From the NCBI GenBank assembly GCA_964035545.1, contig OZ037766.1, positions 3,286,001-3,350,000 on the forward strand: 64,000 nt of DNA, written 5' to 3'. Positions 336-59,229 of the stretch are shown here, in pieces; within the stretch, counting starts at the first letter, position 1, and the number at the start of each line of letters is the position of its first letter. The DNA comes from Bugula neritina (lineage: Eukaryota > Animalia > Bryozoa). The position numbers and the translations under genes are program-made. A model generated the notes under the pieces. The model was not told the DNA's origin and ran no database searches. It worked only from the letters and a program-made list of their open reading frames with translations.

Positions 336-545
336 TTATCCTCTGTAATAATAGCTACCGCGTCTCCTGTGTGTGTTGTGGTATCCCCTGTTGTTATAGG
401 ATCTGTAGCTGTTGTAACCCCTGTTGTAGTTGTTGTAGCGTCTGTAGCTAGATGGCCTGTAGCTGTTGTAGCGGTAGTTGTTGTAACGGTAAGCAGCTGA
501 GGCAAGCACAAGGCAGACAGCCAATAGGATTGCAATGACCTTCAT
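336..545 (-). CDS. Secreted Tyr/Arg/Asn-rich peptide precursor, class B1 (69 aa, ends YYYRG)
   Basis: ATG at 545 after AG acceptor (562-563) and CAACTGTAAAC leader. 17-aa signal peptide [17 protein letters not shown]; 52-aa mature region has 15 Y, 12 R, 10 N. Exon 1 donor at 1201, TATA 1267-1274, 3'-UTR donor at 310. The longer ORF-track start at 617 lies in the intron. Confidence 0.9.
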   Translation of the reverse strand: MKVIAILLAVCLVLASAAYRYNNYRYNSYRPSSYRRYNNYNRGYNSYRSYNNRGYHNTHRRRGSYYYRG

Positions 546-1201
546 GTTTACAGTTGGAAGTCTAAAACACAATAAATAAAAGTTGATACAGTGAACGAAA
601 CAGGTTATATTTCTCATAATTAATTATTAAAAATAATGGCTTGTAGCTGGAACTGTTAGGCCAATACATTAGTGTTAGAGTTGGATTCCAAATATATTAA
701 CTAAACTCTATAATCAGAAGTTATAAACCCAATTAATATTTTTTTAATTTTGTAGCCAGACTGTGGTATTTGCGCAGTTAAGAGTTTTATTTAAAAAGTT
801 GTTTATTTGAAAGCTGCTTTTAAAAATTTATTCAATCAAATTATTATTATTAAATCCTTGCAAATTTGCTGTGCTAAAAGCTACCTTCATTAGAAAAAAA
901 TTAACTCCTATAGATTGAAACAATTATATTGCACTCATTTATAATGCATCTCTATAAGTGAAACAAGTATATAACTTACATGCAATGCCTTAAATATGAC
1001 TATACAGTACAACGGAAACATAACATTATTTCATTGTTGCTTATATGCATGAATATTATAATTATTTTCTTATGAAACAAACTAAATCTTTTATTTTTTA
1101 ACGTATAAAAAGAAATACATTTTGAATTTTTTTAAATACACTCCAAAAAATATTCTAATAAAAAAATTAAAAGAAATATATATATATAACCGATAGCTCA
1201 C

Positions 1202-1500
1202 CTTGGAGAATGATGCTGTAGTAAAACAAGTATAAAACTCTATGAAAGCTTTTGAAAATTTCTCTCTTTTTATACTTCTTTCAAACAGGACACACTACTT
1301 TCTAATTAACCTAAATGACTTGCCAAAATGTAGGAATTGTTTATTGTTTCCTATTTGTGTTCTTGCATAAATTAGTTTTACTAATTGAAAGTACACATCG
1401 GCAATGTTGGCAATACACTAATCCTGTCATCAATGTCTATAAACATGGCCAGGTGACTGCAGACGGGCCGGCGTTAATAGCCAAATGCGGCATTTCTTAC
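1202..1500 (-). promoter_or_regulatory. Class B1 promoter and exon 1 (gene 336)
   Basis: TATAAAAA 1267-1274, donor CAAG/GTGAG, GC-rich upstream block. Confidence 0.6.
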
Positions 1501-4170: not shown

Positions 4171-4416
4171 TTATTTTCCAAAACCAAAGTTATTTGAGCC
4201 AGAAAAGCCAGTCTTTGGATGATGTTTGTTGTGGTTGTTGTAGTACCCATAGGGTCCGTGACCTTTGTTTTGGTTACCATAGTAACCATAGTTAGATGGT
4301 CCATGGTAACCATAGTTAGAAGGTCCGTAGCCCTTATTATGGTAGTTGTGGTTTGGGTAGTAGATAGCAGAGACGAGTGAAAGGCAGACAGCCAATAGGA
4401 TTGCAATAACCTTCAT
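4171..4416 (-). CDS. Secreted Tyr/Gly/Asn/His-rich peptide precursor, class A (81 aa, GPSNYGY repeats, ends FGFGK)
   Basis: Signal peptide [17 protein letters not shown]; 64-aa mature region has 12 Y, 13 G, 12 N, 7 H, 5 K. Predicted introns 4433-4992 and 3827-4134; TATA 5061-5068. Confidence 0.9.
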   Translation of the reverse strand: MKVIAILLAVCLSLVSAIYYPNHNYHNKGYGPSNYGYHGPSNYGYYGNQNKGHGPYGYYNNHNKHHPKTGFSGSNNFGFGK

Positions 4417-8485: not shown

Positions 8486-8728
8486 ATGAAGGTTATTGCA
8501 ATCCTATTGGCTGTCTGCCTTGCACTCGTCTCTGCTATCTACTACCCAAACCACAACTACCATAATAAGGGCTACGGACCGTCTAACTATGGTTACCATG
8601 GACCATCAAACTATGGTTACTATGGTAACCAAAACAAAGGTCACGGACCCTATGGGTACTACAACAACCACAACAAACATCATCCAAAGACTGGCTTTTC
8701 TGGCTCTAATTTTAGTTTTGGAAAATAA
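8486..8728 (+). CDS. Secreted class A peptide precursor (80 aa)
   Basis: Paralog of 4171-4416. TATA 7889-7897; predicted introns 7966-8469 and 8761-8951. Confidence 0.9.
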   Translation: MKVIAILLAVCLALVSAIYYPNHNYHNKGYGPSNYGYHGPSNYGYYGNQNKGHGPYGYYNNHNKHHPKTGFSGSNFSFGK

Positions 8729-9630: not shown

Positions 9631-11662
9631 ACTTCTTGTATTCTTCCTGAAACATTCTAAAGGTGGGCTCTAAAGTTGTGGAGTCTTAAAAATAGTTTCG
9701 CAAAGCAACATTAGTAGAACATATAACATTCAAGTTTTCTACAGAACTATCAGCTTTTTATAATCTGACATTTGTCACTCAAATTATTACATAATTTGAA
9801 ATCAGTATATTATAATCGTTCTTATAGATGTATAAACCTCATTCTAAAATTTCCAATTTGCTAAATCTCAGTTTTAGTTATTTTTATATTTTTGTCATCA
9901 AAGAATAAATTAACTCTATGATCAATAAACATTATTCCATAGTAATCTCGTATAATGTGAACAAAAGTGTTATAGTTTGTTTTAACACAACAATTGAAAT
10001 TAGTGATGCATTTCTATGTTTAATATTATATTATTAAGCTGCATCAATCACTTATGATGCTCTTCTGGGATAATATAACAGTAAATTGAGACTTGCTTTA
10101 TTTAATTTATTTTTAATAGGATATTGTGTCTTGAAGTGAAATTTTCACAAGTTTTTATAATTTAGTATTCTAATAACATACATATCTTGCTTAACTTTAT
10201 ATCTACAATACAAATTGTGTGACAGTTACAGAAAGTATATGTTTCTAACTTTTAATTTAATTAAAAGTTTCATAAATCACCAAAGGGGGCTAAATTTATC
10301 AAAATTCACATGTCAATTGTTTAGGATTGATTTAAATGAATTATTTATTGAGATATTAAATAGTTATTATGTAGATTAATTTAACCAGAATTGAGTTTTT
10401 CATTATTAATATTTTCACATTGCATAATTTTCAAATAAGGTCTCACACTCATTACATTTGTCAGTGCTTTTAGTCCCAAACAAAATAATATATTCAACTA
10501 TAAATTTAAAATATAAATGTGTTTTCAAAGAGTATCTGTCAATCCAAAATTATGGTGCTGCTTATTTAGGATCTTCTATAGTTTTTTTCGGATGAATCAA
10601 TAGTGTACAAATTTTAAAAATACATTCCAAAAACTTTTGCTTTTACTCTGAAAATAATTATTGAGGTGCTCAAAATATTGAAACAATCTTTGTATAAGTT
10701 TAAATAGCTCACCTCACTTTAAAAATAAGTCTATTTTGATTACAATCATAAAACTTTCAATGTATGTTTTCATTATTTTTGCACAAAGTATTTTCAGTAT
10801 TTGAATGGTTATTAGATTGTAGTTAAAATCAATTGGTTTTTTCTCAAAGTGAGTAATATCTATATTTCACGCAACACAGTTATACTAGTACAATACAACA
10901 ATGCAATAAACTAGTGTATCAGTCCACACCACCAACTACTATCTATTATTGTTCGCATTACAAAGGGCTGATGCACAGAAACTAGCCATTCAAGTAGTAG
11001 TGTCAATCTGATGAGCATGACCTGTGTGCATGATCAGTCAAGTTACAGCCCACATAAATTTAGAAAGACCAAATTATATCATTTTATGCAATTATATTAT
11101 TAAAGAATATCAAACATAAAAATAAGCAAATCAAATCAATTTACCAAAAAAATTCATATTCACTTTAAAAACATAAAGTTTACCATTTTTGTGTGTGTGT
11201 TACTTTATATCATCTAGAAATTCCCAAAATATAATAAGACCAATTTGTCTGCTGCATTTTGAGCAGATTGTCCGGCCACCAGTTCAAGGGCTATACATAT
11301 TTGATTTAGTTTAAGATGTCAATCCTAAGTACTAATTTCCAATTGGTCTATAGAGCAAGATTATCTATAATATATGTCATGTGATATGTTATAATCCTAT
11401 TATACTATGACATAATCTAATTTCTATGCAATTTATAGTACCAAAGTAAGTGCAATTTCGTGTTAAAAATATTGCAGTAGGGTAATAATATACATTATAG
11501 CATAAAGTAGTATAATATGTTGTAATCAAACCTTTTTTTTTTCTAAATTGAATATTTTTCTTTAAAAACTATGTTGTGCTAGAGCTCAAATACAAAAGCT
11601 TATTGTTTTATTGTCTGTTTATTAGTTGATTAGAATGAGGCATAATCATTTATTTATATGGA

Positions 11663-11776
11663 TTCTACAATAACCAGAACAAGCATTATTCAAAGACTAG
11701 CTTTTTGTGTTGAACTTTCATTTTGGAAAATAAAGCATTCTAATTGAAACTGCAGTATATATTACCCTGAGTGAGT
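11663..11776 (+). pseudogene. 5'-deleted class A pseudogene fragment (C-terminal codons, 3'-UTR, splice donor)
   Basis: Reads FYNNQNKHYSKTSF then a stop/frameshift, homologous to YYNNHNKHHPKTGF. Retains TTTTGGAAAATAA and CCCTGA/GTGAGT; no signal peptide or promoter upstream. Confidence 0.8.
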
Positions 11777-14374
11777 GTTACCACTTGAACTAATACTTTT
11801 TTATATAGTGAACCAGACGAGGATAGCAAAGGATTATAATTATTAACCTGGTATTATTGTTCACTAGTGCTGAATACACAGTTGCATCTATAATGCAAAT
11901 TATTTATACAAGTTGAAAATGCTTAATAGGCTACGTTGTATTATTGCACCTTTTATGACCAATAATAATCATGATACATAAATAATTTAATTATAGCTTG
12001 TCCTCGGTAATGAATTTCATTCTAATATTACTAATGGTATGCAATAGTATTAGGATAATGCTTATATATTTAAATGTATAATTGTAGATAATTATGAAAA
12101 TTAAGAAGTAAACTTTGTTAATAATTGAACCTTTCATTTTCTTTTCCGTTGTTACTGTTTCACATGCATGCATTTATCAAATTTGTCTGTCGCATATATG
12201 ATTAACACAAATGTAATTCTTCAATAAAGAACCAGGAATATAATTTTAGACAGTAATTGAAAAAATAAAATCATTATAATGCTTTTGTAAAATTTATTAG
12301 TTTTTCAACGTGCATTGAAAAATAATTCAAATTTTTGATAAACATATACAAAACTTTAGTTGTACCTCTGTAGATGCCAATGCTGATGCCCATAATAGAA
12401 GTGTAGCATTTTGATATGGAAATAGTAATTGGTCTTACTAATGCTTGTTTACATGAATTAACACATTTATGTTCCTGGCATGAAACTCTTAGGAATTACT
12501 ATTCTGTCATTAAACTGTGTGCTCGAATTTTTTCCCGTAATTGAATAGTTCTTAGATGTACAAAAACAAAATTATATTAGTTTACCCAATTAGAAGAAAA
12601 AAAAACTTACAATTGGGCAAAGCAAGCTGCTCTAACAATAGGAATTTGCTTTATCATAAATTTTTCATCATTGTAATTTTAGCTCCTGAAATAGGAGAAC
12701 TTGGTGTGAATTGCTGTTTAATTAGCAATTTAGGTTATAGGTTTGTCTGGCTACAAGTTCAAGAATGATATAGCTGTTTTAATTTAGTCTGAGCCAATAA
12801 TACAAAGTATGAATTTTCTTAGTCTAGAGCAAGATTACATATAATATATGTCATGTGATATGTTATAATCGTATTACGCTATGACATATTCGCTAAGACA
12901 TTTTTAGCATTTCTGACTTCTACGTGCAATTTAGTACAAAATAAGTACAACTGAGAGTCACAATTATGCCAATATTATAATAATAAAACATTGAAATATT
13001 ATATGCATTAATTGAAGCTTATTTTTTAAAAATCTCAAACTAAAATGGAACGGCTTATTGTTATATTTGTAGTTTTCTATTATTTACTTAAAAAAATTAG
13101 GCCTATTACTTCGTAATGCTCTGGTGGCTTAGGCGAGTCGTATGTTCTGTGATTGAATGAGCATTAAGAATACAAATTTGCTGTTTTAAAAAAAATTACA
13201 AGAATAATTAACGAAAGTTTTTTATTTCAACTTTTGTGTTAAATATAGTTATTTCATGTAAACAGAATTTTAAAAGGAGTATTTATGTTTGCATTATCAA
13301 GCCAGGTTTTGAAAATTTAAATGCGCTTGATGCTGTTTTACATCAGCCAACAAATTTTACAATGTACTAAAATAGTATATATACAACTTTGTTTGGAAAT
13401 ATTTAATTTATGACTTCGGGAAAAATATATCAGGCAACTGCTATGCTTGTCTAAGAAAACTTGCCTACATCTCCCATGCAAGTAACATATATCTTGAAAC
13501 ATGGAAGCTACATTTTTATCTGTAATAATAACCATGCAGAGGTTGAATATATTAGTGGAACAATAAAATTTTAGAAATCATGCATTGAACTGAAGTCGGC
13601 AGCTAAGCTTCACAACATTTCATTTGTTTAAATTTGTTTTACACTGAATATTCATTTTTGGCAACATGTGTATGCAAAAATGCTGCTGCAATCAGCTTTA
13701 AAAACCGTAAATTGGACTGCAAGCTACATGCTGCTTTTTCTTCAAATTATATAATTTATTGGATCAACAGTCATAAATAAAATTTACGAAATAAGGTACG
13801 AAATATAAAAGGAAACTGCTTGTTATAACATATTTAGCCCCTTTTAAATCTAGCTATATACAATTTCAAATATACCAAAGCTAAAATTATTTTTAATTGC
13901 CACAATTTTAATATTTATTTAGTGAAGTCAAAAGCTACTAAGATAAAAATACTTTTATGCATACTTAACAGTATAAAATTAATTTATTCAAATGTCACAC
14001 TATTACGTTTATATAACCTATATATAATACAATATTGAAGAATAGATAAATATATGCTACTTTATATCTTTTTGACTAGCCACACCTAATAGTTAGAGAT
14101 TAATAATAATAATATGACTAGATAGGTTTGATGATTGGACACTGATGCATTCTACGAGCTGCACTCATGTTCTGCATACAATCTTAACATATAATATATA
14201 GTATAAATTTTTTATTTTTCTAGCATTATCTCCAGTAACTCATGAAAATAGTGCATGTAATTTTATAATTTTGTAAGACATTCCTAATAAAAAGCCTATA
14301 ACTTATTGAGTATAGTATCAGCCTAGAATCTCAAATATGTTTTTATATTGACAATAATATTTTCTTATGATGCA

Positions 14375-15320: not shown

Positions 15321-15566
15321 ATGAAGGTTATTGCAATCCTATTGGCTGTCTGCCTTTCACTTGCTTCTGCTATCTACTACCCATACCACAACCACCATAA
15401 TAAGGGCTACGGACCTTCTAATTATGGTTACCATGGACCATCTAACTATGGTTACTATGGTAACCAAAACAAAGGTCATGGACCTTATGGGTACTACAAC
15501 AACCACAACAAACATCATCCAAAGACTGGCTTTTCTGGTTCAGCTAACTTTGGTTTTGGAAAATAA
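15321..15566 (+). CDS. Secreted class A peptide precursor (81 aa), in the palindrome spacer
   Basis: Same signal peptide and GPSNYGY repeats. TATA 14676-14683; predicted introns 14752-15304 and 15594-15745. Confidence 0.9.
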   Translation: MKVIAILLAVCLSLASAIYYPYHNHHNKGYGPSNYGYHGPSNYGYYGNQNKGHGPYGYYNNHNKHHPKTGFSGSANFGFGK

Positions 15567-17070: not shown

Positions 17071-18451
17071 TATGTTTATTTGTTAATCATATATATGTTA
17101 TTTCATATCAAACTCACAATACTAGGGAGATCTAAAACTGTTTTATCAGTCTTGTTTATTGAGCTGCCATATAAGGTGCAGAAATATTAAAATGTATAGC
17201 TGAACGCAGCATAAACTGCCAAATGGACGCAACTATCAATGTAGTATTTTCTCATCCAAGTGTGTGATTTAGAATAGTGGTAATTAATGTTAAACTTATT
17301 TAAAGATAAATGTATAACTAATTTAAAGTCACTTTACAACTTGCTTTTTTGCACATTTTTATAATTGCAGTCAAGTAGTGGTGTTGTATGTATAGATGGA
17401 TTTAAATGTTGTTTGATCTGTTGAGATGTTTTTACACATACATAATAAAATGTTTATTTTAGTATATTATAATATAATATGAATAATAATTCTTATACCT
17501 ATAGCAAATTATATATTTTACCCAGAGTTCCATAGTATAAAAATTATACAGATCTGGTAATGGAGGAATATTTTAACATCTCAGAGACTGTGTTGCTAGG
17601 AAGGAGTTTTGATGATGCAAAAAGATTTACCTTGATGACTCAGCAAAAATGACTCCTGTAAAGCTGATCACGGAGTGTGCTTGTCTTTGCTTCCTTCAAC
17701 AAAATCATGCCACCACTTCAAGAAGCACGATCAGCAAAGTTGAGAGATTAATTGGATTAGAATGTGACAGAAGAATTGTCAAACTAAGAGCCTCATCAGG
17801 AAATACCTTGCTTAGATGACAAAATAGACAAGTCATGTAATTTGTATTAAATCTTAAAGAATCATCTAGTTCTAAGAGATATCAGAATAACATATATATG
17901 TCTTATTAATTTTTTCATGTCATAATTTTTGCTATAAGGTCTTAATAAATTTAAGCACTATAATCTACTTTGCAAGCTCAAGCTGCAAGGCTTTGCTTTT
18001 AGATACATATAATAATTTGAACATCATTATTTTAACTAATATATCAAATTTTGAAAAGATATATAAACACAAGTGCTTCAGTGGTAGAATCTATTCACCA
18101 CAATTACCAACAAAAATATTTTTGGAATATAAGCTTTAATGAAATTTCCTATAGCTTTTTCTATTTTTACATCTCCTATAGGGTTTTTTGATGGTGGGCT
18201 CTATAAATGCTAGGAATACAATTTTTAGTTAAAAGAACCCAAGTAAAGTTAAATTGACAAGATTTGTTTTTTTATTCACCGTTTATAAAGGATACAATAC
18301 AACGAAGTTTATTGAGCATATATTTTTATCTTGCATATGCATGTGTATATTCAGCACTATAGTGAACAATAATACCATGTTATTAAATATAGTCCTCTGC
18401 TATATCCCAGTCTGGTTCACTATATCAAAAAGTAATAGTTAAAGTGGTAAC

Positions 18452-18564
18452 ACTCACTCATAGCAATATACTGCAGTTTCAATTGGAATGGTTTATTTTC
18501 CCAAATCAAAGTTCAACCCAAAAAAGCTAGTCCTTGAATGATGTTTGTTCTGGTTATTGTAGAA
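18452..18564 (-). pseudogene. Mirror copy of the 5'-deleted class A pseudogene fragment
   Basis: Reverse complement matches 11663-11776 with the same truncation point. Confidence 0.8.
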
Positions 18565-20534
18565 TACATATAAATGAATGATTATGCTTTTTTTGAAGCA
18601 ACTAATAAACAGACAATAAAACAATAAGCTGTATTTGAGTTCTAGCACAACATAGTTTTCAAAGAAAAATATTCAATTCTAAAAAAAATTTTTTGATTAC
18701 AACATATTATACTATTTTAATGCTATGTATATTATCACCATATTGCAATATTTTTAACACGCAATTGCACTTGCTTTGGTACTATAGATTGCATAGAAAT
18801 TAGAAACGTGATTATGCCATAGTATAAGAAGATTATAACGTATGACATGGCATATATTAATTATAGATAATCTTGCTCTAGACCAATCGGGAATTGGTTC
18901 TAAGGTTTGATATCTTAGTATAGAATAAATCAAATATGTATAGCCCTTGAACTGGTGGCCGGACAATCTGCTCAAAACACAGCAGAAAAAAATTGTCCTA
19001 TAATATTTCAAGAAATTCTAGATGATATAAAGTAACACACACAAAAATGGTAAATTTATGTTTTGAAGTAAATATGAATTCTCTTGCTAAATTGATTTGA
19101 TTTGCATATTTTTATGTTTTTTATTTTAATTGCATATAATAACATAATTTGGTCTTTCTATATCTATATAAGAACTATTCAAATACTGAAAATACTTTGC
19201 GCAAAGATAATGAAAAAATACATTAAACATTTTATGGTCGTAATCAAAATACTTATTTTTAAAGTGAGGTGAGCTATTAAAACTTATGCAAAAATTGTTT
19301 TCAATATTTTGAGCACCTCAATAATTATTTTCAAAGTAAAAACAGAAATTTTGTGAATGTATTTTTAAAATTTGTACACTATTGATTCATCTAAAAAAAC
19401 TATAGTAGATCCGAAATAAGCAGCACCATAATTTTGGATTGGCAGATATTCTCTGAACACGCATTTATATATCTTGAATTTATAGTTGAATATATTTTGT
19501 TTGGGACTAAAAGCACTGACAAATGTAATGAGTGAGAGACCTTATTTGAAGATTATGCAATGTGAAAATATGAAATGAAAAGCTCAATTCTGGTTAAATT
19601 ATTCTACAGATCATAACTATCATGTCTCAATAAATAATTCATTTATTTCAATCCTAAACAATTGACATGTGAAGTTTGATATATTTAGCCTTCTCTGTTG
19701 ATATAAGGAAATTTTAGTTTAATGAAAAGTCAGAAACTATTTTCTATAACTGTTACAAAATTCGTATTATAGATATGAAGAAGCAGTACATGTATGTTAT
19801 TATTTAATACTGAATTATAAAAACTTGTGAAAATTTCACTTCAAGACGCAATATTGCATCAAAAAGAAAATTAAATAAAGCAAGTCTCAATCTACTGCAT
19901 TATCCCAGAACAGCACCATAAGTGATTGATGTAGCTTATTAATATAATATTAAACATAGAAATGCATCACTAATTTTAATTGTTGTGTAAAAACAAACTA
20001 TACACTTTTGTTCACACTATATATACGAGGTTACTAAGGATCGAATAGTGTTTATGGACCATAGAGGTAATTTATTCTTTGATAAAAACTTCAACAACAA
20101 CTAAAATTCGGATCTAGCTAATTGAAAATTTTAGAATGAGGTCTACATTTATAAGAACGATTATAATATAATCATTTCAAAGTATGTAATAATTTGAGTG
20201 ACAAATGTGAGATTATAACAAGTTGATAATAGTTTTGTAGGAAAGTTGAGTGTTATAATATGTTCTACTAATGTTGTGAGAAAATTATTTTTTAAACTTC
20301 ATAACTCTATAGAGCATACCTTTAGAATGTTGCAGGAAGCCTGCAAGAAGTTGCTGATATTTACAGCATAGATTAATGTAATATAAGTTATAATCATATG
20401 TTGTTGCTAATAAAAATTTCAAAAAACTTCAACTTCCAAAGAGGACCTAAAATCAATAATATTGAAGGGACAATTTCAAGCTGACTACAATACCAGTCCT
20501 TGCTTTTATTATATATCAAAATTAAATTTTAAAG

Positions 20535-20611: not shown

Positions 20612-20617
<6 letters not shown>

Positions 20618-31756: not shown

Positions 31757-31978
<222 letters not shown>

Positions 31979-34733: not shown

Positions 34734-34840
34734 TGTAGTGTTGAGTTTACCCCATGGTCCCGTGGTGTAATGGTGGCACACTTTCTTGCAAGCCAGAAGA
34801 CTGGGGTTCGATTGACAGTGGGGGCAAAATTATCTTTCAC
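34734..34840 (+). mobile_element. tRNA-derived SINE-like repeat, family 1
   Basis: A-box TGGTGTAATGG, B-box GGTTCGATT, imperfect stems, shared leader TGTAGTGTTGAGTTTACCC and GGGGCAA-ATTAT tail. Confidence 0.65.
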
Positions 34841-38505: not shown

Positions 38506-40208
38506 GATTTTTTTGCTAAAAGAATAACAAGTTGGTTTTATTTCAAGTTGCTTTTTATTAGGACAAAATTATTTATTACAATTCATTTTCATTGAGCTTT
38601 TAAATATCTTTTGTTACCGATTTACCTTCAGCAAGCTAAATCTTAGTCAAGAGTAAAACTAGAATCAATATAATATATACTTACAGTTGTATGGTTACAA
38701 GACAGCTTGTGTACGGTTGAGATGCAGAGTAGAGAATGAATTCAACATAACCCACTACTCTATTTATACTCTAGTAGACCGGCATTTGGGTGATTGATTG
38801 ATGAAAAATAATGACTATTTCTGGTTACACATGTCATGCAGTGTCTTTAATATTCTCAAAAACTGCACCATCATTGCATAACATTACTTTTAAGTTTTCT
38901 TGCTGAATAAAGTGGTACCATAGTTACTGCTTGCCGCCATCAATTACCCTGTAGTCAATTCATTCAATCCCCTCTTGACTTAAAAAGCACAACCTACAGG
39001 ATACAAATAGAAGAACTATGAGCCTAACTTAGTTATAATATACTAACATGTATTAAATATATGCATAATTCTACACATTATATTAATATGTTTTACAGAG
39101 AGTTGGCAGTATTTTAATTTATTGAATTTTCAATCTTTATACTTTCCAAATTATTATAGCATTAACCAGCATTTCAAACTTGTTTAAATTTTACCATTTC
39201 CGTATTATTAATTAATGCTAGGTTATAGTCACAAACAGATTGTGCAAAAAATGATCGAGATATATGAGCATTAATAGTATTGAAAATATTGATTATCAGA
39301 CAAGAAATTTTTTTCTTTTATTGAATTTTATTATAATAACTTGTGAAAATTAAAAATGTTAAAGACATAAACAGAAAATACTACAATATAATACCAAAAA
39401 TTATCAAAACAATTTGCTGTATGATCGTGATTAACTTATAGTGTTAACAGTATCTAAAAATATAATCACTGCACAAAACTTCTAGAAAGCAATTTGCCAT
39501 CATAAAAACAGTGATATATTCATGAAGATAGCAGCACATGTGAATGCATTTAATGTGGTTTAATCTTTTCATCAAAGCAAAATATTTTAGTATAAATATA
39601 TTAGCAATTATATGCACATGCAGATAAACTTAAGTATACACATAGCTTTACTGTAATTTCAGCTATACACCATCACCACATAGCACTGTGAGTCATTTAG
39701 ACTTTGCCACAATCATCTCATTTATTATCATTACTTATTTCCATAAAGCATATACTTAAAAAACTGGAAACCTCAATAATTGTGTTGAATCATTCACCTT
39801 ATATAGAATGCACACTTATTTTATTATTGGTACATTCCGGTCTGATTATAAGTTCACTTGTACTAAGTTAGCTTTTGTAAGTAGACTGACGACTTTCACA
39901 GTTATAATAATAAGAAAGTTTCGATTTCAATTTCTATATAATTTTATTAGTTTCAACTTCCTATAATATATCATATAGATATATGCTTTAATTTGTAGAA
40001 ATTGATCATATGTAGATTTTATAATATAAGTCCTAATGCAGAGCAATTTCTGATCACAGAAAGCCATAAGCACTTGCGGTCTTTGCATAACGACACTTCA
40101 ATCCGAATATGAAAAAACTATGTATAATAGCAAAGTAACCTCTAGCCCACACTTACAACTATGATAGTATATTTGCTATACGCTGCAGTAGCGTAAGGCT
40201 ACTCTTAG

Positions 40209-40315
40209 TGTAGTGTTGAGTTTACCCCGTGGTCCCGTGGTGTAATGGTGGCACACTTTCTTGCAAGCCAGAAGACTCGGGTTCGATTGACAGTGGGGGC
40301 AAAATTATTTTTCAC
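40209..40315 (+). mobile_element. tRNA-derived SINE-like repeat, family 1 (duplicated with the tandem unit)
   Basis: Near-identical to 34734-34840. Confidence 0.65.
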
Positions 40316-41290
40316 TCAGCAGTTCTAGCTATTGTATACCACTGAGCTGAAAAAGACCAGTATTATTGAGTTCATTGTAGTATACTTTGTTTACAAATAT
40401 GCAATCTAATTGATGTAATTTTTTCTAGTAAACCAAGAACAATAATCATACGCAATCAGTAAGTGTGTGGTTACTACTTAAGGTATCTATTATAAGCAAG
40501 TTATGTGATCACAAAGCTTGTAAATAATTTTGTGAAAAGAGGCCTATATAAGGATGGTTTAAATGTTTGCTGATGTACTTACCTTTGATTCATTTCCAAG
40601 CGAATAAATTATTTTTTAAATAAAAACTAAAATTTGTCGAGTTTTTGCAATTGTGCATGTGTAATAAAGCTAAATTATTTACCACAAAGATGATGAAATA
40701 TTCAAACTGTGCCAATATCCTATAGTTAGCACTAGTTGAAAGAAGCTGCATAGAAAATTAACATTCTAAATTAGCATAACAGGCTTGAATTTTAAATCAG
40801 GAAATTTAAACAAAAAATGTATTTTTTTGTTTTTTAAAATTAGAACTGAACTTGGGTGTTAGGTGAAATATTATGAACCATCACTGTTTTTTTCTATAAT
40901 GTGTTTATAAATATATTTGCATTTATAACATAACACACTGATTATATATGAATCAAAATACTGATATTATTGTTGAAGATTTTATTTTTCAATATTTTTA
41001 TTTTCATTTTACTATATACTAATAATGACTTATGTTTGTAGATAAGTTTTTGAATGATATGTTTTTTTTTGCAAATGATTCATAAAAAGTTTAGACGTTG
41101 AAAACTGGTTGTGGTGATTCACATGGCAGGTGATCAATTATAATAAAGAAATACGTCCATTAAATCACTTCTGTATATAATTAAGCACTTAACATATAAC
41201 TTGCCTGTGCCTAATTGCCATTAAATTGTACAAAGAGTATTCATTGCGCAAATGTGTCAGCCTTGCCTGTTTTGAAGATTAGAAATAAAC

Positions 41291-41396
41291 TGTGTGGGTT
41301 AAAAATTAGGTTGAACCAATTAGCACACGCCTCGAGTCTCCTATAGGAGACTCGAGGCGTGTGCTGATTGGTTCAACCTAATTTTTAACCCACACA
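41291..41396. repeat. 106-bp loopless palindrome (1 mismatch)
   Basis: TGTGTGGGTT...GAGTCTCCTA|TAGGAGACTC...AACCCACACA, centre between 41343 and 41344. Confidence 0.95.
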
Positions 41397-43710
41397 TATT
41401 GCTATAATATTTTATTATAGATACTTGAAAGCACAGTTCTTTCTTTTTGATCAGATGTCATTAATTTGAAACTTTAAACTAGCTACTTTTTATTTTCATT
41501 TTAAAATTAAGAAGGTAAATTTACAAATTGCAAATTTTATATTTTATTAAAGCTCAATAATTTATTGAAATTGCTTTACAACAAAGTTTGTTTTGCTGTT
41601 TCAAAAATCATCACTTACATTAATTAAATACTCAATTAATTTTAAGAATACAAGCATACATTTATAATTAACTTACAAATAGATTTTTTTAAATTTCAGG
41701 AAAATGGGCTCAGCTATAATTCTTATTCCGTTTTTTCTCCAATACAAGATATCATGTAGATAGCTTATTGTAACTTTACTGAGATATATTTCAATACTTA
41801 TAACAGTTGCATCAGGTATAAGCTGTATATTGGGACTAACATCAGTGTGGTCTCAAATAAATAAAACAGATAATAAGTTACTGAGAATTTAGAGTCTAAA
41901 AATTATGATTTATAGACGCTTTTTACAATTTCAACCTAATAATGGTGAGCAGTTCTATAACCAATTTAAATTGACAATGTAGATTTCACGTAAACTTTTT
42001 TTTTCTGACGCTCAAGTATAATACACACTACCAGCCATATATAATTTAATAAATTTATTTGTTGAAGCAATTTTATCAACAATAATTCTAGTCTCATCAA
42101 TTGCTAATTATAGAGTAGAGTCTAGCTTTAGTTAATCTGGCTGCCATATTTTTTTAAGTTAATGAGAGATTGTTTAATTGCGAGTAAAATAATATGCAAA
42201 CTGGACTCATTTCTTTTAATCATAGTTTTGGTCTATATTAAATATATTAAAACCAAGTATTATTTTTTATATCAAGTTGAAGCTAAGTTTTTTTTTATTT
42301 TGCAGATAAATGAAAAATTGCAATTAATTTAATTCATTTTTAGCCTAAAAATAATATAATATGTGGAGTTGTTTTGAGTCATTAACTACAATTTTTTAAA
42401 AATGGTTAGCGCTATAATGCTAAAAGGTAGGCTATAATATGATTGGCCTGAAACAACCAATCAGTATGCAAATATTTCACAATTTTATTTATTTGTTACA
42501 ATGTCTAATTTTCGAAATTTCTTAAAAAATTTAAAAATGACACTAATAGCTAGTACACATCAAAAACCATCTGATTTATGAAACCTTTTTAAATGAAGCT
42601 TATGCAGTTGCACTAAAAGTACTCATATCCTGCAACTTAAATACTCTAAAGTTAAATTTTCAATCAAAAAGAGAAAAAGAATATAATATAGTTCAAACTA
42701 AACAAATGCGTATTTCAATAATAATGCACGGTAGCTAAAATAGTTTTTCATAAGATTAAACAGCTTTCTTAAATAATATTTTCTACTTATTTGTAGTTTA
42801 GTTATAATTATTATAAAAATAACATAATAGCCTTAAGTTGTTTAATGTAAAGAGAATATTTACTCTAAGTTTTATGTCTGCAGTATTTCTATTCACATAA
42901 AACTGCACATTATATATAATATGTAATCCTAAATGTGTCGTGTGTCACAAAGGATCAATTGAGACAAAGCAATTATTGCACAATCTGTAAAACTAAATTA
43001 ATAAAATACTACAGAATGTGCTAAAGATTAGATAAAGTTTTGTTCAATTATTATCTATACTTTTAAAGTGTTGCTACGCTTCATTTTACTATGCTTCGCT
43101 TTGTATAGGTATTTTGTCTGTTTGTGTTATCATATATATGCCAACAATATTGCGGTAAGAATAAAATGTATGTTGTGCTTTAGTATCAGTTAATTGACCA
43201 AACTTATTTATATTGAATCTAAGCTTGCTATAGTAATTAGCGCTTAACAGCGTGTTTTGGACCACCGATATTAGCGTTTTTTTACTTTAATTAATGACTA
43301 TATAATAAAATCAAAATGCTGGTGTTTTTTGAAATTGTGATATTTTTGTATTTATTCAACAGAAACTAAAGTTCATTTTAATATTTAAAAAAATAAAAAC
43401 TTAAACAAAAGCTTAACAAGAAAAAACTTTTAAATTTATTGTTATTTGTCCATCAAGGTTCCAGTCGATTCATTCATCATGCATCAGTGTCCGAGGTTAG
43501 GTCCAGATTCTAAAATAATAAATCCCAAAAGTCACATAAATTTAGTAAACATAAAAAAAATTAGAAAAAAATCAAAAAGGAAATATTGAAACTAAAATTA
43601 CTTATAGACAAAAGATTAATGCAATAATTGCAAAGAATAACCAGTTGGTAGATTTTTTTAATTTCTGAACACAAAATGCTGCATCTATAAATAACAACTT
43701 ACTGAAGCAC

Positions 43711-43953
43711 TTAGTACAAAGTGTTGTAAGATGGTTTTCTGTAGCTACCATATGAGGTCCTTCTGTTGTAGCTGTTGTAACCACCTCGTCTGTTGTTGTA
43801 ACCTCTTCTGGTGTTGGAGTATCCTCTGTTGTAGTTGTTATTGTAGTTGTTGTAGCGAGCTGGTCTGTTGTAGCTGCCTCTAGGTGCATATTGCCCATAG
43901 CTAGCAGCAGCAAGTGCCAAACAGACAGACAATAGGATTGCGATGACCTTCAT
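43711..43953 (-). CDS. Secreted class B2 peptide precursor (80 aa)
   Basis: Tandem duplicate of 38236-38505, 9 aa shorter. TATA 44209-44216; predicted introns 43964-44132 and 43510-43702. Confidence 0.9.
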   Translation of the reverse strand: MKVIAILLSVCLALAAASYGQYAPRGSYNRPARYNNYNNNYNRGYSNTRRGYNNRRGGYNSYNRRTSYGSYRKPSYNTLY

Positions 43954-46900
43954 GATTTTTTTGCTAAAAGAATAACAGATTGGTTTACTTTCAAGTTGCT
44001 TTTTATTAGGACAAAATTATTTATTACAATTCATTTTCATTGAGCTTTTAAATATCTTTTGTTACTGATTTACCTTCAGTGAGCTAAATCTTAGTAAAGA
44101 GTAAAACTAGAATCAATATAATATATACTTACAGTTGTATGGTTACAAGACAGCTTGTGTACAGTTGAGATGCAGAGCAGAGAATGAATTCAACATAATC
44201 CACTGCTCTATTTATACTCCACTAGACCGGCACTTGGGTGATTGATTGATGAAGAATAATGACTATTTCTGGTTACACATGTCATGCAGTTTCTTTAATA
44301 TCCTCAAAAACTGCGCCATCATTGCATAACATTACTTTTAAGTTTTTTTGCTGAATAAAGTGGTACCATAGTTACCGCTTGCCGCCATCAATTACCCTGT
44401 AGTCAATTCATTCAATCCCCTCTTGACTTAAAAAACACAACCTACAGGATACAAATAGAAGAACTATGAGCCAAATAGTCTGAAGATGCATGCCTTTTGA
44501 TCATAGCTATTATTATAACCTTGAAACAATAGATCTTTTATCTTTTATAAATTCTTTATTTGATGCCTTTGTTTACAATATTTTTACTACATAATGACTT
44601 CCCATGCAATCTAAAATACTGCAACTTGAATAAGAGTCAACAAAAAGCTTAAAATTAACATAGGTAAAAAGTAAAAGTTATTTAATTTGGCTGTCGGTAT
44701 ATTTGTCTATAATATGCAATAAAAACCAAGATTGTGCAGAGAACAAGTGAGCACCAAGAAATAACTATTTTTCCAAGTTGAAAAGCTAAATTCACAAATA
44801 TACATAATTTCGTATTACAAAAGAACATATTTGGAGTAACCAAATTTATAGCCAGCATTTATTCCCTTTGTTATGTACTCAAACACTTTAAGTTATACAG
44901 TTTATTAATTTGCTAGTTATACTCATTAACCAAGTGCTATCCATTTTAATTTCTTTGAACCTTGGTTTTCCCAATGCCATTAATAATTTTAAGCCTAAAG
45001 TTATGTTTTGCGAGAATCAATTAGGAGACCGCCTCATTTAAGTTTCTAATATACTTTAGTATAATAAACATAAATGACATTTCATACAATTCAAGCAGTT
45101 ACAGCAATGTATAATTATATAAAGAGTGTTTGCTTGTTTTGAAATCCCGCATTTAATAATATTTAATTGTAAAAAGCATAATCGAGAAAAACAAAACTTC
45201 TTCAATAAATGACGCCTCATTATGCAACTATATTGCCTGTACGGTCATATTACAATTCAATCTTGTGGTAAAAAGTTTATAAATAATTTGTTTAAAAGTA
45301 GACTGGAAGAATTGTTTAATGTTTGATGAGATACTGATTTCTGAATCACTTCCAAATGAATAAATTATTTTATGAAAATGAGGCTGTGGTATCGCAGCAT
45401 GTATACGTATATGCGGGGTGACACATGAGAGGGAGGTTATTAATGAGATCTGTACCACTTTATTCATAGTAGCTTGAATATTTATTAATGTTTATTCACA
45501 AGGTTGGATATTGTGCAATAATAATTAAATAATTAGTTTTGCTAATTAGAATTAATCTAAATAAACTATAGATTGCCTAAAATATTTCTCTTATAATTAA
45601 TGTATTACAATTTGTTCACTATAACCCATATCACAGTTTAATGTTTTTTACCAAAAGAAAGATTAGTGTTGTAATACAAATAATTTGAAATGCTTGAATT
45701 AGAAGCTTCCATAATTGACTTTGTTGAATATAGCTGTAAATCTCGCTTATTATGGAACTATAATGAATTGTAAAATTAATGTTTAAATGAAGTTTTAACA
45801 CTTGTAGTCCTAGCTGTAATATAATATATTTTGTAATATAGCAGTTTTTATTGTTTAAGCTTTAATGGGAAGTATTTTAAAATAAATCATATTTTGAAAG
45901 GTGGACGTGGTGATTGGTGTAACCCCTATGCATCAGCTTTCCTGTGGTGTACTAACACTACCCAAATTGCCATTATATTATGCCTTAAACTTTTTGCCTC
46001 AGATGAGTGCACTTTAAGCACAATAAGACTTCCCATTTACTTTATATCCTTTAAAAAGTATCAATTTGTGCGTGGGCCAGTATTGCCTAAACATTGAAGA
46101 TTATAAACTAGGCAAAAACTAATTGGTTGGAGTTGTACCAACCAAAAAGTTCTTCAAGTTTTACAGTAGCTGCTTTGAAATATGCAAGGGCAATCCAAAC
46201 AAAAGTTGCATTACATGATGTTTTTTGAACATTTGAAACTATTTTGCTATAGCAAGTGCGGTGACATTCTTCAGTGAGTACAAGAGTGTATATAAAATGT
46301 AAACACCTTTTAGAACATGTTCTAGAAATTAGAATCAAATTTGGTCACCTTTCACCGCCGTGGTCTTGCTACATGAAATCTGTCTCTTTCTCTAAGTAAA
46401 CTGGGTCAAATATGAATCTTTCCAAACTCCCTTTTGTAAACATAATATTTGCTTCATAATTACGAGTTTCTTCAATTCTTTCAACTTAGATGATATTTTA
46501 CAGGTTTTAAAACCAAGATTTAGTTACGACGAAACTTATATAACATAGGTATTATATAATACAAAAATGCTAATCACTACAACTCTTTTAAAATGAGAGA
46601 TTTTACAAAAGCAGTACCAGAAAGCAACTAACTTAAAAAGAAGGTGATTAGCTAGTAAACAGCTATTAATTTTATTGGGCGCAGTACTTTTAGTTTATAT
46701 AGTAACTTTTGTATGTAAACTAATCTAGTTAAAAGCAAACTTGGCAACATAGTTACTGCAAAACTGGAACACTGTAGAAAATAATAACTGATTTTCAAAT
46801 TTGCATTTTGGTGAAAGCTTTCTGTTTGTTCTGAGCCATCAATGTCATAATCTGAGTCAATGCAGCTCAAGAAGTGAAAGAGAAAAGTAAGCTGCATTCG

Positions 46901-50556: not shown

Positions 50557-50829
50557 ATGAAGGTCATCGCAATCCTATTGTCTGTCTGTTTGGCACTCGC
50601 TGCTGCTAGCCTTGGGCAATATGCACCCAGAGGCAGCTACAACAGACCTGCTCGCTACAACAACAACTACAACAACAACTACAACAGAGGATACTCCAAC
50701 ACCAGAAGAGGTTACAACACCAGAAGAGGTGGTTACAGCAGCTACAACAGAAAAGGTGGTTACAACAGCTACAACAGAGGGACCTCATATGGTAGCTACA
50801 GAAAGCCATCTTACAACACTTTGTACTAA
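50557..50829 (+). CDS. Secreted class B2 peptide precursor (90 aa)
   Basis: Coding sequence almost identical to 38236-38505. TATA 49910-49917; predicted introns 49988-50540 and 50838-51642. Confidence 0.9.
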   Translation: MKVIAILLSVCLALAAASLGQYAPRGSYNRPARYNNNYNNNYNRGYSNTRRGYNTRRGGYSSYNRKGGYNSYNRGTSYGSYRKPSYNTLY

Positions 50830-52319: not shown

Positions 52320-54345
52320 CATATCACCTACAGATTTGTTTGGTAGCACGAAAACTTCTGCCACCCGTCAGGGTGATGCATAAAATAATGAAACAACAAT
52401 ATTGGAATGTAAAAGTTATGGATTTAAAATGCAGCTAAAGTATTAAAAGTGCAATGGGCATTATCATAAAACAAAGCTCATGTATTAAAACCGGTTCAAG
52501 TAAAATTTAGAGCTATGCCTGCACGTTGATGTTAGTTCAGATCTTTTATTTAATCTACATATAAAATTTCTCTAAAATACAAAGCTTGCAACGTTTTGAG
52601 TTGGGATTATAGCCGAGTGCATGGCTAATGATCTTCCATTTGGTCGTGTAGTTGGTGCCTTTATGTTCTAAATACCATAAGTGCTTGCTTAACTCTGTGA
52701 CATTTTTGTATCTTTTGTGCTTATAAGAGCAGGTATGCATGGTTGTATATATAGGTGCTTTTTAAAGTCAGTTTCACATAGTCCGATGTATGTGTTGGAG
52801 CTGTTTGGTGATGTTATGGTGGCCTGGTAGATGATATTGGAGAGTAAGCACTTGCCATTCAGTGGGCAGTTTGATTTTCTTATACAATTGCAGGTTCTCT
52901 TGGTGCTACTGGTGGTTGTTAAGGAGCTTGTCGTTTGGTTAGCCAATTTTCTTTTGTTATTCCTAATAATTTTGTACATTATGTTGGGCATGCAAGAATA
53001 GCTCAGTTTGAGTGTATTTCTATTAAGTATATTTCTAAGAGGATGCTTTGAGTGAAACACTTTGCCTATTATGTTGAGGAATTGTCTTCCCATGTTGGTT
53101 GCAACATGCTTGCTGTAGGGTGGATTGAACTATATAATGTTCCTCCTTCTAGGTTTATTACGGTGTGTTTGTTGCTTCTCATATTGTAATGTGAAGTTGC
53201 ACCCACTCTTTTTTAGGGCGTCCTGGTAGATGTGTGTTTCACTAAATTGCAATTCTCTTTATTAGATGAGAGCTTGGAGAGTATTTTGTTAATGGATTTA
53301 GAAATGTTTCTAATGATAGATTGGGGGTGGTTGCTGTTATGGTGAATGTAGATAGGGGTGTTGTCAGATTTATTATAAATGGTTTATCAGTGGCATCAAC
53401 GAGATTGAGGGTGATATTTAAAAAGTTGATGATTTTCTTGTTGGCCTCGACAATAATTCCTAAGCCAACGGGTTTGAAAATTTTGCATAGTGCTTTCTTA
53501 GTATTTTCCACTTGCCTGGGTAGATCTTTCAGTATGGCTAAACCACCGTCGCGGTACAGCCCGATGTTATTTTGTAGCTCTTTCATCAGTAGTAAATTAA
53601 GGATATACGCTCATACCAAGTCACATATTTCGGCCCCATCATATGAACCCATTGGGACAACAAATAGTTTGTTTTGGGATTTTTTTATCCAGGGTTGATT
53701 AGCATTAAAACTAAGTTTCTGGCCTGCATAATGATGTGAATCTCCCCTGGTGTAGTTATGAAGTGGGTCGTTGCATATTTCAAAGCATCTATAAGTAAAA
53801 GCTCCTGAGTAATGCTAGGGTAAAAGTTTATAATGTCAAAGCTTATGAATGTATAGTTTTGCTTTTTTTCATGCCGTTGAATCAGAGTAAAACTTCTTGT
53901 GTGTTTTTCCATTGGTTTATTTGCGTGGAATCGCGTATTTTGATGTTGATGGTTTCCAAAAGTTGTTCGCTTAAAATTCTCCCTTTTTCTGATTTTGCAG
54001 GGTTGATGAGTCTATATTGCCAGTTGTTGTTAAAATTTTCTTTATGATCTTTGATGGTTATAAATGGTTCCTTAGGTGTCATGGCTTGTACTCTGTCATC
54101 CAGATTAAGTGAGCTCGAAACTTTTTAGCTTCATTGTTTATGCTGTCAAGTGATTTCTGACTTGTTTTCTGATAGTCTTTGGTGATGCATTTGTGCAAGG
54201 CAGTTTGGTAATCCTTAGGTGATACTTGGTAAAAAATAGATGATTTGCCAGCTGGTATGATAACGCTCATTGACCTTTTAGTTTTGTTGGTGTCACTTAT
54301 AAGCTTTTGCTGAACTTGGTCAAGTTGGAGATGTCGGAATTTAAT
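52320..54345 (-). mobile_element. Decayed Penelope-like retroelement (RT plus GIY-YIG endonuclease), frameshifted and 5'-truncated
   Basis: Fragments PFITIKDHKENF, RLINPAKSE, FISFDIINFYPSI, LYRDGGL (degenerate YxDD), CNC..CPLNGKC..IIYQA..TYIGLCE (GIY-YIG), KRCKLCILEK and LNKRSELTSTCRH occur in the order typical of PLE ORFs. Confidence 0.88.
52323..52377 (-). ncRNA. Degenerate type I hammerhead ribozyme motif in the PLE 3' region
   Basis: Minus strand: ATCACC-CTGACGG-GTGGCA(gaagttttcg)TGCTAC-CAAA-CA(aatc)TG-TA-GGTGAT. All three helices pair; the core deviates at A9>G and G12>C. Confidence 0.7.
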
Positions 54346-54347: not shown

Positions 54348-54715
<368 letters not shown>

Positions 54716-56148: not shown

Positions 56149-56260
56149 TGTAGTGTTGAGTTTACCCAGTGACTCCTGTGGTGTAATTAGTTAGCGCACC
56201 TGCTGGTAAGCCGGAGGGCTGCTTGTATAGTTCAAATTTTGGTGGGGCAACTATTTTACA
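56149..56260 (+). mobile_element. tRNA-derived SINE-like repeat, family 1
   Basis: Leader TGTAGTGTTGAGTTTACCC, GTGGTGTAAT A-box-like motif, GGGGCAACTATTTTAC tail. Confidence 0.55.
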
Positions 56261-58926
56261 ATAGCAGCTGTATATATAGTGCCAGTCATACTATTACTAA
56301 TTAAGTATAAGGTAGAATACAGGCATATATTTTAATTGCATTATTATTCAAGCCTGCAGATCAAAGGGTATATCAGCTACTTCCAATTTCCAATGTGGTA
56401 TAAAGTTATTAAAATATCACAAGACAAACCACGACTCAGCACCTTTCTTATACACATAATATCCTTATAATGCATCTTTGGAAGATGCAAAAAACTACTC
56501 CACTGCAAGAGTGCTCACTGCACTATGACCCCTTCTACTCTGTTGCCAAATAACATGTTCCCATGCTTTAATATAACCATTATATTGCATGAATATATTA
56601 GATGGTGTTTTGAACATGCAGTGCTAACATTTCTTAAGTCCAGCTTTGCTGAAAAGACACACATCCATTTGATTCACTGCATACAGAAGAATATGTACTA
56701 TAACTTATATACACCAATTATATGAAACTGTCTTTGTTGATTATAAAATTATTCTAGTTTTTAATTGCACCCCTGCATGCATGTGTGTGTGATTCACAAC
56801 GGGCAGCTATTTAGCTCTCTGACAAATGGCCATGGAATTGACAACCCTCACCCCCCCCCCTCCCCTGTTTTCAATCTAGTGGTTGAATGCTAAAATCTGA
56901 ACCGATGTTTAATTCAAACAGAAAACATCTAGCTTTTCTTTCATAATTTGATATTCATGCAAGAGCTCAAACGGATTAAAGTTTTTGTGAATAATCAAAT
57001 TTAGAATTTAGGAGAAATAATATTATATTACATTATATGATTACTTATAGTTTACACCAGAAATTATTAGCATAATATGCAAATTACTAAAATTAAGGAG
57101 CATATATTATTATATAGGATCACCAAATGTCATGTATATATATAGTTAGCCTAGATTTAACTAACTTGTGTAAAGCTTGTTTCCTATAATATTTTACCTG
57201 TTCACCTGCTTTAATTATTCATAAGCAATTTCTGGTTTGAATACTATAGTCTGGTATAGTGCTGTAAGTATTGTGAATTTGAAAACGTGCTGCTTTTCAT
57301 TTTTATATACATACAACTCACAGTTTATAGGCATCACGAGTTTTGGTCTCCCCATGCAGCTTTCAATTTCTAGTGAGAGTTCCATGGTTATCTTATAAGT
57401 CAAGTTGCAAAGAATTGCTAAGTTTTGGCTTTACACCAGCACTTGCTAGCAGTTGAATCTGAATTAAAAATTTGCGGTATGTTTTAAATTATATCTGTTT
57501 GTAATAGTACTAAATGTTTTATAACTTACCCCCATCAGTCAAGTATGAAATATGTGCAACTTAATAGGGATAAAAAGCGCAAGTTTACACTTTAATGAGT
57601 TATAACTTGTCATTTAATTATTGATATATGTCTGTTATAAAAAATGGATTAATAAGAAGCTTTGTGAATTAAAATTTGTAGAAAACATACTTCTATGCCA
57701 ATTTTCTCAAAAAATAAGTTGCTTTTTGCATTATGGCAATAATAATATTGAGGGATCGTTCCTTTACCCAAGTTTATATATTATACTTTGTTATTTTCAT
57801 TACTTGTAGTCATTAGTATATTTCTAGACCTATAATGACTTGCTAGTGCCTGAAGTTGTTGTTATTTCAGCGAAAGTAAAACAAGCTAATTTGAAGAATA
57901 TATTAACAAAAGTGACATATCATATGGCACAATATTTTGTTGTAAATCAGTTGCTGTTCTTAGTTTGCAGTTTGATAATTCAGAAAAAGCTGTTTAATAA
58001 AAGGATACGCGGAATAACTTATTATATTGCTAAGCTGATATTGGACCTTCTTCTCAATAACAATTTTAGGACCCTAATATAAAAACCGCCAGCGTTTTAG
58101 AGTTAATGCGTATAGCTAGCCTAATAATTATACAAGATGCTGTAGCCTCTGTAATAGAAGTATAATTTACGTTGATAATGATAGTTCTCATGGTCATTTT
58201 TCAATTAAAAAATTATTATTTGGGAAGTGACTATATTAATCATGTGAAAAGGGGCAGTTCAAACAGTGACTGTGCAAAATTCTTAGAGAAAAGAATATTT
58301 CCTACAAAAACCAGAACATTCTAGTGTGTTTTAATTAATTTGACATGATTATTAGGGAAGCTGATTATACATGATTAATGGAACTACGCAGTGCCCTTTA
58401 TATTTATAAAACAAGAAGCTATATATATGTTTATCGTACCACAATTTTTAGGATGTTGAAACACTTTATATCCGCTATATACTTAACGACACACTTAGAA
58501 TTTGACACACACAGTAATTAATATTATGTTGATCAATGCCGGTATCACAGCATATAAATAGAGTTGGAGTTGACTCAGTTATTCAGAATCTACTTTCTAG
58601 CTGAACTGTACGCAAGCTGTCTACAGATAAGTAAGTATTTATATATATAGTTATATAGTGTAGCATTTATAAAATATAGAATATATTAAATAATGTTATA
58701 TTTTAATCAAAGATTATAAATGTTACCACTCAATCTTTGCATATATAGCATGCATAAGCTATTTATTTTTAATTAAAGCGGGCAATTACAATATTGTTGT
58801 TTAAAAACTAAAATGCTGTGAATTTATAATTTATTTTAAAAAGTAAATATCTGCTAATACCAAACTTGGTAACAGCTAGTGTTGATTTAGCTAACAATTA
58901 TTGTTTGTAGTTAAAAACTCAGAATC

Positions 58927-59229
58927 ATGAAGGTCATCGCAATCCTATTGGCTGTCTGTTTGGCACTTGCTGCTGCTGCCAACTATAGAGGGTATCCAAG
59001 CAGAGGCAGCTACAACAGACCAGCTCACTACAACAACAACTACAACAACAACTACAACAGAGGATACTCCAACACCAGACGAGGTTACAACACCCGAAGA
59101 GGTTACAACACCCGAAGAGGTTACAACAGCTACAACAGAATAAGGTCTGGTTACAACAGCTACAACAGAAGGAGCTCATACAGTAGCTACAGACCTGTAC
59201 GAAGAGTATCTTACAACACTCAATACTAA
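58927..59229 (+). CDS. Secreted class B2 peptide precursor (100 aa, three RRGYN units)
   Basis: Signal peptide [22 protein letters not shown] 58553-58560; predicted introns 58631-58910 and 59242-59460. Confidence 0.9.
   Translation: MKVIAILLAVCLALAAAANYRGYPSRGSYNRPAHYNNNYNNNYNRGYSNTRRGYNTRRGYNTRRGYNSYNRIRSGYNSYNRRSSYSSYRPVRRVSYNTQY

Follow-up and report, generated by a model that had tools for sequence, protein, structure and literature searches.

An array of acid-free, tyrosine- and arginine-rich peptide genes with a shared signal peptide in Bugula neritina: a candidate family of bulk-secreted material proteins

Foot protein-3 (Mfp-3) of the mussel Mytilus is small, secreted and basic, is rich in Gly, Tyr, Asn and Arg, and occurs in many variants (PMC9999432, PMC6474901); Mfp-3f has a mass of 6 kDa and an isoelectric point (pI) of 8-10, and Mfp-3 is not built of repeated motifs (PMC9999432). 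Its further features are 5-20 mol% of 3,4-dihydroxyphenylalanine (DOPA), hydroxyarginine, an origin in the adhesive gland and a location at the interface with the substrate. Dbfp9 of Dreissena and TMP-1 of Mytilus are rich in Gly, Tyr and Asn (PMC6474901), and Dbfp7 is a small, polymorphic, DOPA-poor wet adhesive which is mostly disordered (PMC12993968). Here we analyse a family of short genes from the bryozoan Bugula neritina, the products of which may be material proteins of a comparable kind. Twelve of them lie in a stretch of 64,000 nucleotides of chromosome 2 (C2:3,286,001-3,350,000, on a contig of 33,575,671 bases), referred to below as the window, with positions counted from its first letter. 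The genome searched comprised 216,009,554 bases in 321 pieces; assembly tzBugNeri2.1 is described as 216.00 Mb in 320 scaffolds plus the mitochondrion, with a chromosome 2 of 33.58 Mb (PMC11480708).

With Mfp-3 the Bugula peptides share small size, a signal for secretion, basic charge, a Gly/Tyr/Asn/Arg-rich make-up and many variants, and their predicted mature mass of 6.8-10.2 kDa (somewhat larger in one subfamily, PRG) was counted as agreeing with the 5-7.5 kDa expected of Mfp-3. They differ in having no homology to Mfp-3, in carrying short tandem repeats, in lacking Trp, in belonging to a different phylum and in the scarcity of tyrosinase in their genome. They are likewise Gly/Tyr/Asn-rich and polymorphic as are Dbfp7, Dbfp9, Dbfp15 and TMP-1, and (TMP-1 excepted) similarly small, yet far richer in Arg and Asn than these, free of acidic residues, and without a sequence match to them among 5.8 billion proteins. 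Shematrins, KRMPs and the high-Gly-Tyr keratin-associated proteins are small, basic and Gly/Tyr-rich, are encoded by clustered multigene families and are produced in large amounts for a cross-linked matrix; the Bugula peptides resemble them in size, charge, Gly/Tyr content and clustering, but Asn and Arg dominate in them, the Cys/Trp basic domain of KRMPs is absent, and Pfam and protein searches gave no match. We suggest from these comparisons that the family works like the small Gly/Tyr/Asn/Arg-rich byssal proteins without being one of them.

The twelve open reading frames (ORFs) of the window are intact and begin with the same hydrophobic leader of 17 residues, which starts with MKV and ends in an Ala-X-Ala-type site; 11 of its 17 positions are invariant, and it was judged to be a signal peptide by its h-region and the Ala-X-Ala rule. 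A pattern built on the signal codons matched the genome exactly 29 times, always on chromosome 2, whereas its reversed control matched nowhere, so that the shared-signal ORFs are not a product of chance. The 798 mature residues of the window genes consist of Tyr (21%), Asn (19%), Gly (15%), Arg (11%), Ser (10%), Pro (5%), His (5%) and Lys (4%), and include no Asp, Glu, Cys or Trp at all; over 29 genes the figures are Tyr 25, Asn 17, Gly 14, Arg 11 and Ser 10%. Arg and Lys together make up about 15% and aliphatic residues only about 3%. Predicted pI is 9.5-10.8 and net charge +4 to +17. A first-pass annotation of the window had reported the near-invariant signal, the missing Asp, Glu and Cys and, for the gene at 336-545, a count of 15 Tyr, 12 Arg and 10 Asn in 52 mature residues, all of which we reproduced; its view that these are real, constrained genes of a secreted type is borne out by the signal-pattern control, by purifying selection and by a recurrent promoter module (28 of 31 genes, below). 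The features of the window are as follows.

336-545, minus strand: gene of the AY (Arg/Tyr) subfamily, 69 amino acids (aa), Gly end; TATA 1274, exon-1 donor 1201, acceptor 16 nt 5' of the ATG, donor 25 nt 3' of the stop
4171-4416, minus: gene of the H (His/Gly/Tyr) subfamily, 81 aa; TATA 5068, donor 4992, late donor 36 nt 3' of the stop
8486-8728, plus: H gene, 80 aa; TATA 7889, donor 7966
11657-11813, plus: decayed relic, the 3' third of an H gene with 3' flank; 76% identity to 25650-25799, gapped
15321-15566, plus: H gene, 81 aa; TATA 14676, donor 14752
18345-18570, minus: decayed H relic without the signal part and with stops in every frame; twin of the 11657 relic in inverted orientation
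21237-21482, minus: H gene, 81 aa; TATA 22026, donor 21950
25485-25730, plus: H gene, 81 aa, TATA with a T-to-C change; exon-1 donor 600 nt upstream of the ATG
29331-29561, plus: AY gene, 76 aa, with one extra 7-residue repeat; TATA about 706 nt upstream
32033-32317, minus: gene of the PRG (Arg/Asn/Ser) subfamily, 94 aa; TATA 32659, initiator (Inr)-like TCATT, donor 32575
38236-38505, minus: PRG gene, 89 aa; TATA 38768, donor 38684; 86% identical to EB796_002705
43711-43953, minus: PRG gene, 80 aa; TATA 44216, donor 44132; syntenic copy in the second assembly
50557-50829, plus: PRG gene, 90 aa; TATA 49910, donor 49988; syntenic with EB796_002705
58927-59229, plus: PRG gene, 100 aa, the last gene of the array; TATA 58553, donor 58631
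20616-31353: inverted copy (88%) of an 11-12 kb cassette AY + H + H; other copies at -2792 to 8927 and -16179 to -4437
33538-44475: two tandem 5.5-kb units (90% identical) with one PRG gene each

Since the cassette is present three times, once inverted, and the PRG unit twice, the twelve genes are not twelve independent observations. They form the distal half of an array of 24 genes over 117 kb (C2:3,228,620-3,345,229), which continues for 57 kb upstream of the window; no further member was found within 50 kb beyond the gene at 58927-59229. Outside the array, chromosome 2 carries three genes at 2.434-2.442 Mb and another two at 15.78 Mb, giving 29 in the genome. These fall into five well-supported clades, H with eight genes (His/Gly), AY with three, SYH with five, LYG with eight and PRG with five, of which AY, H and PRG occur in the window. 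Two Phe/Arg/Gly-rich outliers at 2.372 and 2.379 Mb have the leader and promoter layout of the family with introns inside the coding region, and were analysed exon by exon instead of as a joined model. Three copies are broken, one at C2:3,265,955 (start lost, frameshift) and the two relics of the window. The array (C2:3,226,001-3,346,000) has a G+C content of 28%, against 33.5% in the upstream flank and the chromosome, and 43% in the coding parts.

The assembly GCA_010799875.2 served as a natural outgroup. It is collinear with window positions 35-61 kb at about 82% identity (a divergence of about 18% in non-coding DNA), on which ground it probably represents another cryptic type within the B. 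neritina species complex. The family is present there in synteny (EB796_002701/2/5, 020098-104, 022568-72, 003886-9, 004439-47 and 020868-9), annotated only as hypothetical proteins, together with a third Phe/Arg/Gly-rich multi-exon outlier, and all subfamilies were found in this assembly or in B. neritina metagenomes. Uncollapsed haplotypes were rejected as a source of the copies, which are 75-94% alike, lie in both orientations and are multiple in the second assembly as well; chance ORFs and read-through of microsatellites were rejected on the signal-pattern control, the composition and codon tests and the promoter module.

In order to place the family among known proteins, one member, a 16-sequence profile and a mature region were searched against 5.8 billion proteins, and a further 1.84 billion representatives were screened; within the sensitivity that low complexity allows, only hypothetical proteins of B. 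neritina were returned. Pfam, the PDB and the ESM Atlas held nothing usable, and a metagenome scan confirmed no relative. The Mfp-3 profile PF04202 reached at best 11.7 bits (E 0.35, an outlier gene) against a cut-off of 22, with a trace in two of 16 members. The family thus appears lineage-specific without a recognised homolog, and its resemblance to Mfp-3 is compositional only, as had been proposed; restriction to Bugula is not proven, because the collections searched probably include few bryozoan proteomes. Our literature search found no paper describing the EB796 family proteins, none naming a bryozoan adhesive or cuticle protein, and no bryozoan skeletal proteome; the B. neritina and Bugulina transcriptome papers contained no sequence-level expression data. 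Together these data support, at the level of sequence, a real, undescribed and lineage-restricted family of about 30 genes that is larger and more ordered than first noted.

A TATA box followed 65-90 nt later by a splice donor precedes 28 of 31 genes at a distance of 260-730 nt, an arrangement found in 13% of random kilobases, and an initiator-like TCAGT or TCATT often stands 22-30 nt downstream of the TATA. A splice acceptor lies 4-19 nt 5' of the ATG, and the best late donor of every one of the 29 single-exon genes is 8-36 nt 3' of the stop; by the 50-55 nt rule, a donor that near the stop escapes nonsense-mediated decay. From the upstream TATA and donor, the acceptor before the ATG and the donor after the stop, each of the 29 genes is predicted to have three exons, with a short non-coding exon 1 and the complete reading frame in exon 2. 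Starts at upstream ATGs, which would lengthen the N-terminus, were rejected because these ATGs fall in intron 1, and so were hidden second coding exons for the twelve genes, whose best donor is always past the stop and which have no similar coding stretch downstream. Matches in JGI data are genomic contigs with introns, not transcripts. In the gene at 25485 the altered TATA (T to C, at about 24810, plus strand) is accompanied by an intact exon 1 and donor, and this is possibly a weaker copy.

Mature regions are under purifying selection. Within subfamilies, the ratio of nonsynonymous to synonymous polymorphism (pN/pS) of the mature part is 0.05 in SYH, 0.09 in AY, 0.20 in H, 0.25 in LYG and 0.49 in PRG; between the assemblies, the eight closest pairs, which are approximate pairings and in one case take in a little intron read-through, give synonymous and nonsynonymous divergences (dS, dN) of 0.22 and 0.08 and a ratio (omega) of 0.35 for the mature part, and an omega of 0.13 for the leader. 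Only 3 of 82 independent observed changes created Asp, Glu or Cys, whereas about 20% of viable point mutations are expected to do so (P ~2e-5); selection therefore keeps acids and cysteine out. The first-pass annotation had also relied on indels that keep the frame; this holds for the intact genes, and just 18% of the gaps in introns have a length divisible by three, but it partly reflects the selection of intact ORFs, two decayed relics being present in the window. Its further premise of a variable mature region, used to argue for antimicrobial peptides, did not survive, for the window holds three conserved subfamilies spread by segmental duplication and conserved across two Bugula lineages.

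Codons ending in C are strongly preferred: TAC makes up 78%, AAC 90% and AGC 95%, compared with 42, 37 and 37% in flanking open frames, only some of which are confirmed as genes, and Lys and Gly codons are unshifted. A bias of this kind would indicate that the transcripts are very abundant and under translational selection; GC-biased conversion was rejected as its cause, as Lys, Gly and four-fold Ser codons are unshifted. AlphaFold models the signal helix alone, with the remainder below a pLDDT of 50, and the mature regions are accordingly predicted to be disordered. Internal tandem repeats of 15-27 nt vary in copy number, and length changes by whole units of 5-7 residues. In four of eight representatives, aromatic residues are spaced more evenly than in shuffled sequences (P<0.01); even spacing of this sort has been linked to the liquid condensation of low-complexity domains. 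Tyr/Phe is the most frequent exchange in the LYG subfamily, which together with the Phe-rich outliers suggests that for some members the aromatic ring is more important than the hydroxyl group.

The peptides seem to be produced in bulk, are predicted to be disordered, tolerate changes in repeat number and keep strictly to their composition; this points to a material whose property comes from composition and not from a fold or receptor. We favour, at a probability of roughly 0.55, Bugula-specific, bulk-secreted, disordered aromatic/Arg material proteins of the colony cuticle or cement, which would condense through cation-pi contacts and possibly be cured by peroxidase or laccase; of the adhesive and material roles proposed at first, a cation-pi material fits best, and the DOPA component is weakened by scarce tyrosinase, Tyr-to-Phe exchange and the Phe/Arg-rich outliers. 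With strong TATA promoters, optimal codons and numerous near-identical copies, the family would yield a large burst of product in gland or epidermis. The peptides may be stored condensed and, in seawater, would phase-separate by Arg-aromatic (cation-pi) contacts and by stacking of aromatic rings, either on their own or together with a polyanion, for instance a sulfated polysaccharide; Arg and aromatics without acids would favour cation-pi condensation once seawater salt screens charge. The condensate would wet the substratum or chitin and then harden, the most plausible route being the coupling of unmodified Tyr by a peroxidase or laccase, and His in the H subfamily may add pH switching or metal binding. 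An adhesive site (larval internal sac, rhizoids) and the body-wall cuticle appear about equally likely. The larval internal sac is also the attachment organ. It forms the body wall and secretes cuticle (PMC4990251), and since one organ does both, the adhesive and cuticle roles may overlap.

The choice of curing chemistry rests on an exon-level search of the genome. Tyrosinase gave a single exon match (C7:2,091,060-2,091,200), which covers the first copper site (CuA) only, and no arthropod-type phenoloxidase was found in that search; heme peroxidases gave 87 exons at no fewer than 15 loci, and laccase-type multicopper oxidases 23 matches at about 11 loci, several of both in tandem arrays. Given many peroxidase and laccase loci against one tyrosinase exon, dityrosine or laccase coupling is favoured over DOPA. 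The laccase-type arrays lie at C3:22.33-22.39 Mb (seven genes) and C5:7.14-7.18 Mb (three), those of heme peroxidase at C9:8.06-8.14 Mb (about five), C3:1.19-1.24 Mb (four) and C7:9.24-9.28 Mb (two to three). A carbohydrate sulfotransferase gene (PF03567; L058:13847-20856) stands 3 kb from the outlier EB796_004446; it could supply the polyanion partner, or its position could be coincidence. Several points weigh against a bulk-secreted material: no gene for a cross-linking enzyme adjoins the array, the enzymes were counted at exon level and the counts are lower bounds, defence peptides would equally be expected to be highly expressed, the tandem repeats account for part of the even aromatic spacing, and the likeness to known materials is compositional only.

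A more specific proposal, which we put forward tentatively and consider rather unlikely in full, is that the family supplies the main proteins of the underwater glue of bryozoans: an independently evolved, Mfp-3-like set that needs no DOPA in seawater, condenses through Tyr/Phe and Arg and is cured by peroxidase or laccase, the Arg-, His- and Phe-rich subfamilies dividing primer and bulk tasks. Systems of this kind are already known from other marine animals; a marine glue free of DOPA would be a clear case of convergence, in which the composition of Mfp-3 was reached with another chemistry, and could inform antifouling work and the design of wet adhesives. B. neritina fouls surfaces worldwide and serves as a laboratory model of settlement, and the family offers about 30 short, synthesisable candidates with mapped promoters.

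The peptides might instead be linear cationic host-defence peptides of the colony surface or coelom, which kill or select microbes and possibly manage the bryostatin symbiont. Arthropods have Gly/His-rich and Gly/Phe/Arg-rich defence peptides, and linear cationic antimicrobial families such as the myticalins, armadillidin and histatins combine a conserved signal, a cationic low-complexity mature part and many genes. The Bugula family has these same three traits, with small size, clustering and the charge of +4 to +17 in addition; the AY genes (336-545, 29331-29561) end in Gly and five window H genes in Phe-Gly-Lys, which are possible amidation signals, and toxicity to E. coli is recorded for soluble peptides of the Mfp-3/5 type (PMC9999432). 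Selection is nevertheless purifying in the mature parts instead of diversifying (pN/pS and omega as above), with no arms-race pattern, and copies are near-identical within subfamilies and across two lineages; the few aliphatic residues, the lack of a predicted amphipathic helix, of an acidic propiece and of cysteines, and the absence of a Pfam match also speak against such a role, which we regard as unlikely. Were it true, the family would be new all the same.

True Mfp-3 chemistry, in which tyrosinase would turn much of the Tyr into DOPA for binding of mineral surfaces and quinone tanning, agrees with the Tyr/Asn/Gly/Arg make-up and size, with the Tyr residues that adjoin Arg or Lys (9 of 15 in AY, 11 of 17 in SYH) and with the automatic UniRef name 'Foot protein-3' on one outlier; it is made improbable by the contrast between one tyrosinase exon, with no arthropod-type phenoloxidase, and the peroxidase and laccase exons of the same search, by Phe in place of Tyr in some members and by the PF04202 cut-off not being reached. 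Least probable of all, if only slightly, are neuropeptide or hormone precursors cut at Arg-Arg, or a component of an egg, embryo or mucus coat: the PRG genes do repeat Arg-Arg pairs and the H genes do end in Phe-Gly-Lys, but Gly follows Arg-Arg instead of preceding it, acidic spacers are absent, repeat number varies freely, some 30 copies with strong codon bias are atypical of signalling genes, and a limited text search of a B. neritina neuropeptide survey returned no such peptide.

Further sequences lie at the edges of the family. In the second assembly, L056:17580-18260 (minus strand) holds a more divergent member with the same TATA/exon-1 layout, a different leader and Phe/Arg/Gly-rich exons. 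Three weak profile matches about 9 kb apart at C2:19,847,877-19,866,392 (best E 0.007, mostly to the leader) may be a further divergent multi-exon branch. One AY copy in the second assembly (P0006) reads 11 residues further, and the frameshifted members P0004, P0018 and P0019 (second assembly and metagenomes) are pseudogenes or assembly errors. In the window itself, long TA/TG microsatellites at 31139-31353, 31757-31978 and 54350-54713 give spurious Tyr/Ile-rich ORFs. Frameshifted pieces at 52558-54124 (minus strand), without a Pfam match or a counterpart in the syntenic region of the second assembly, are presumably remains of a Penelope-type retroelement, as we take their reverse transcriptase-like and GIY-YIG-like stretches to indicate.

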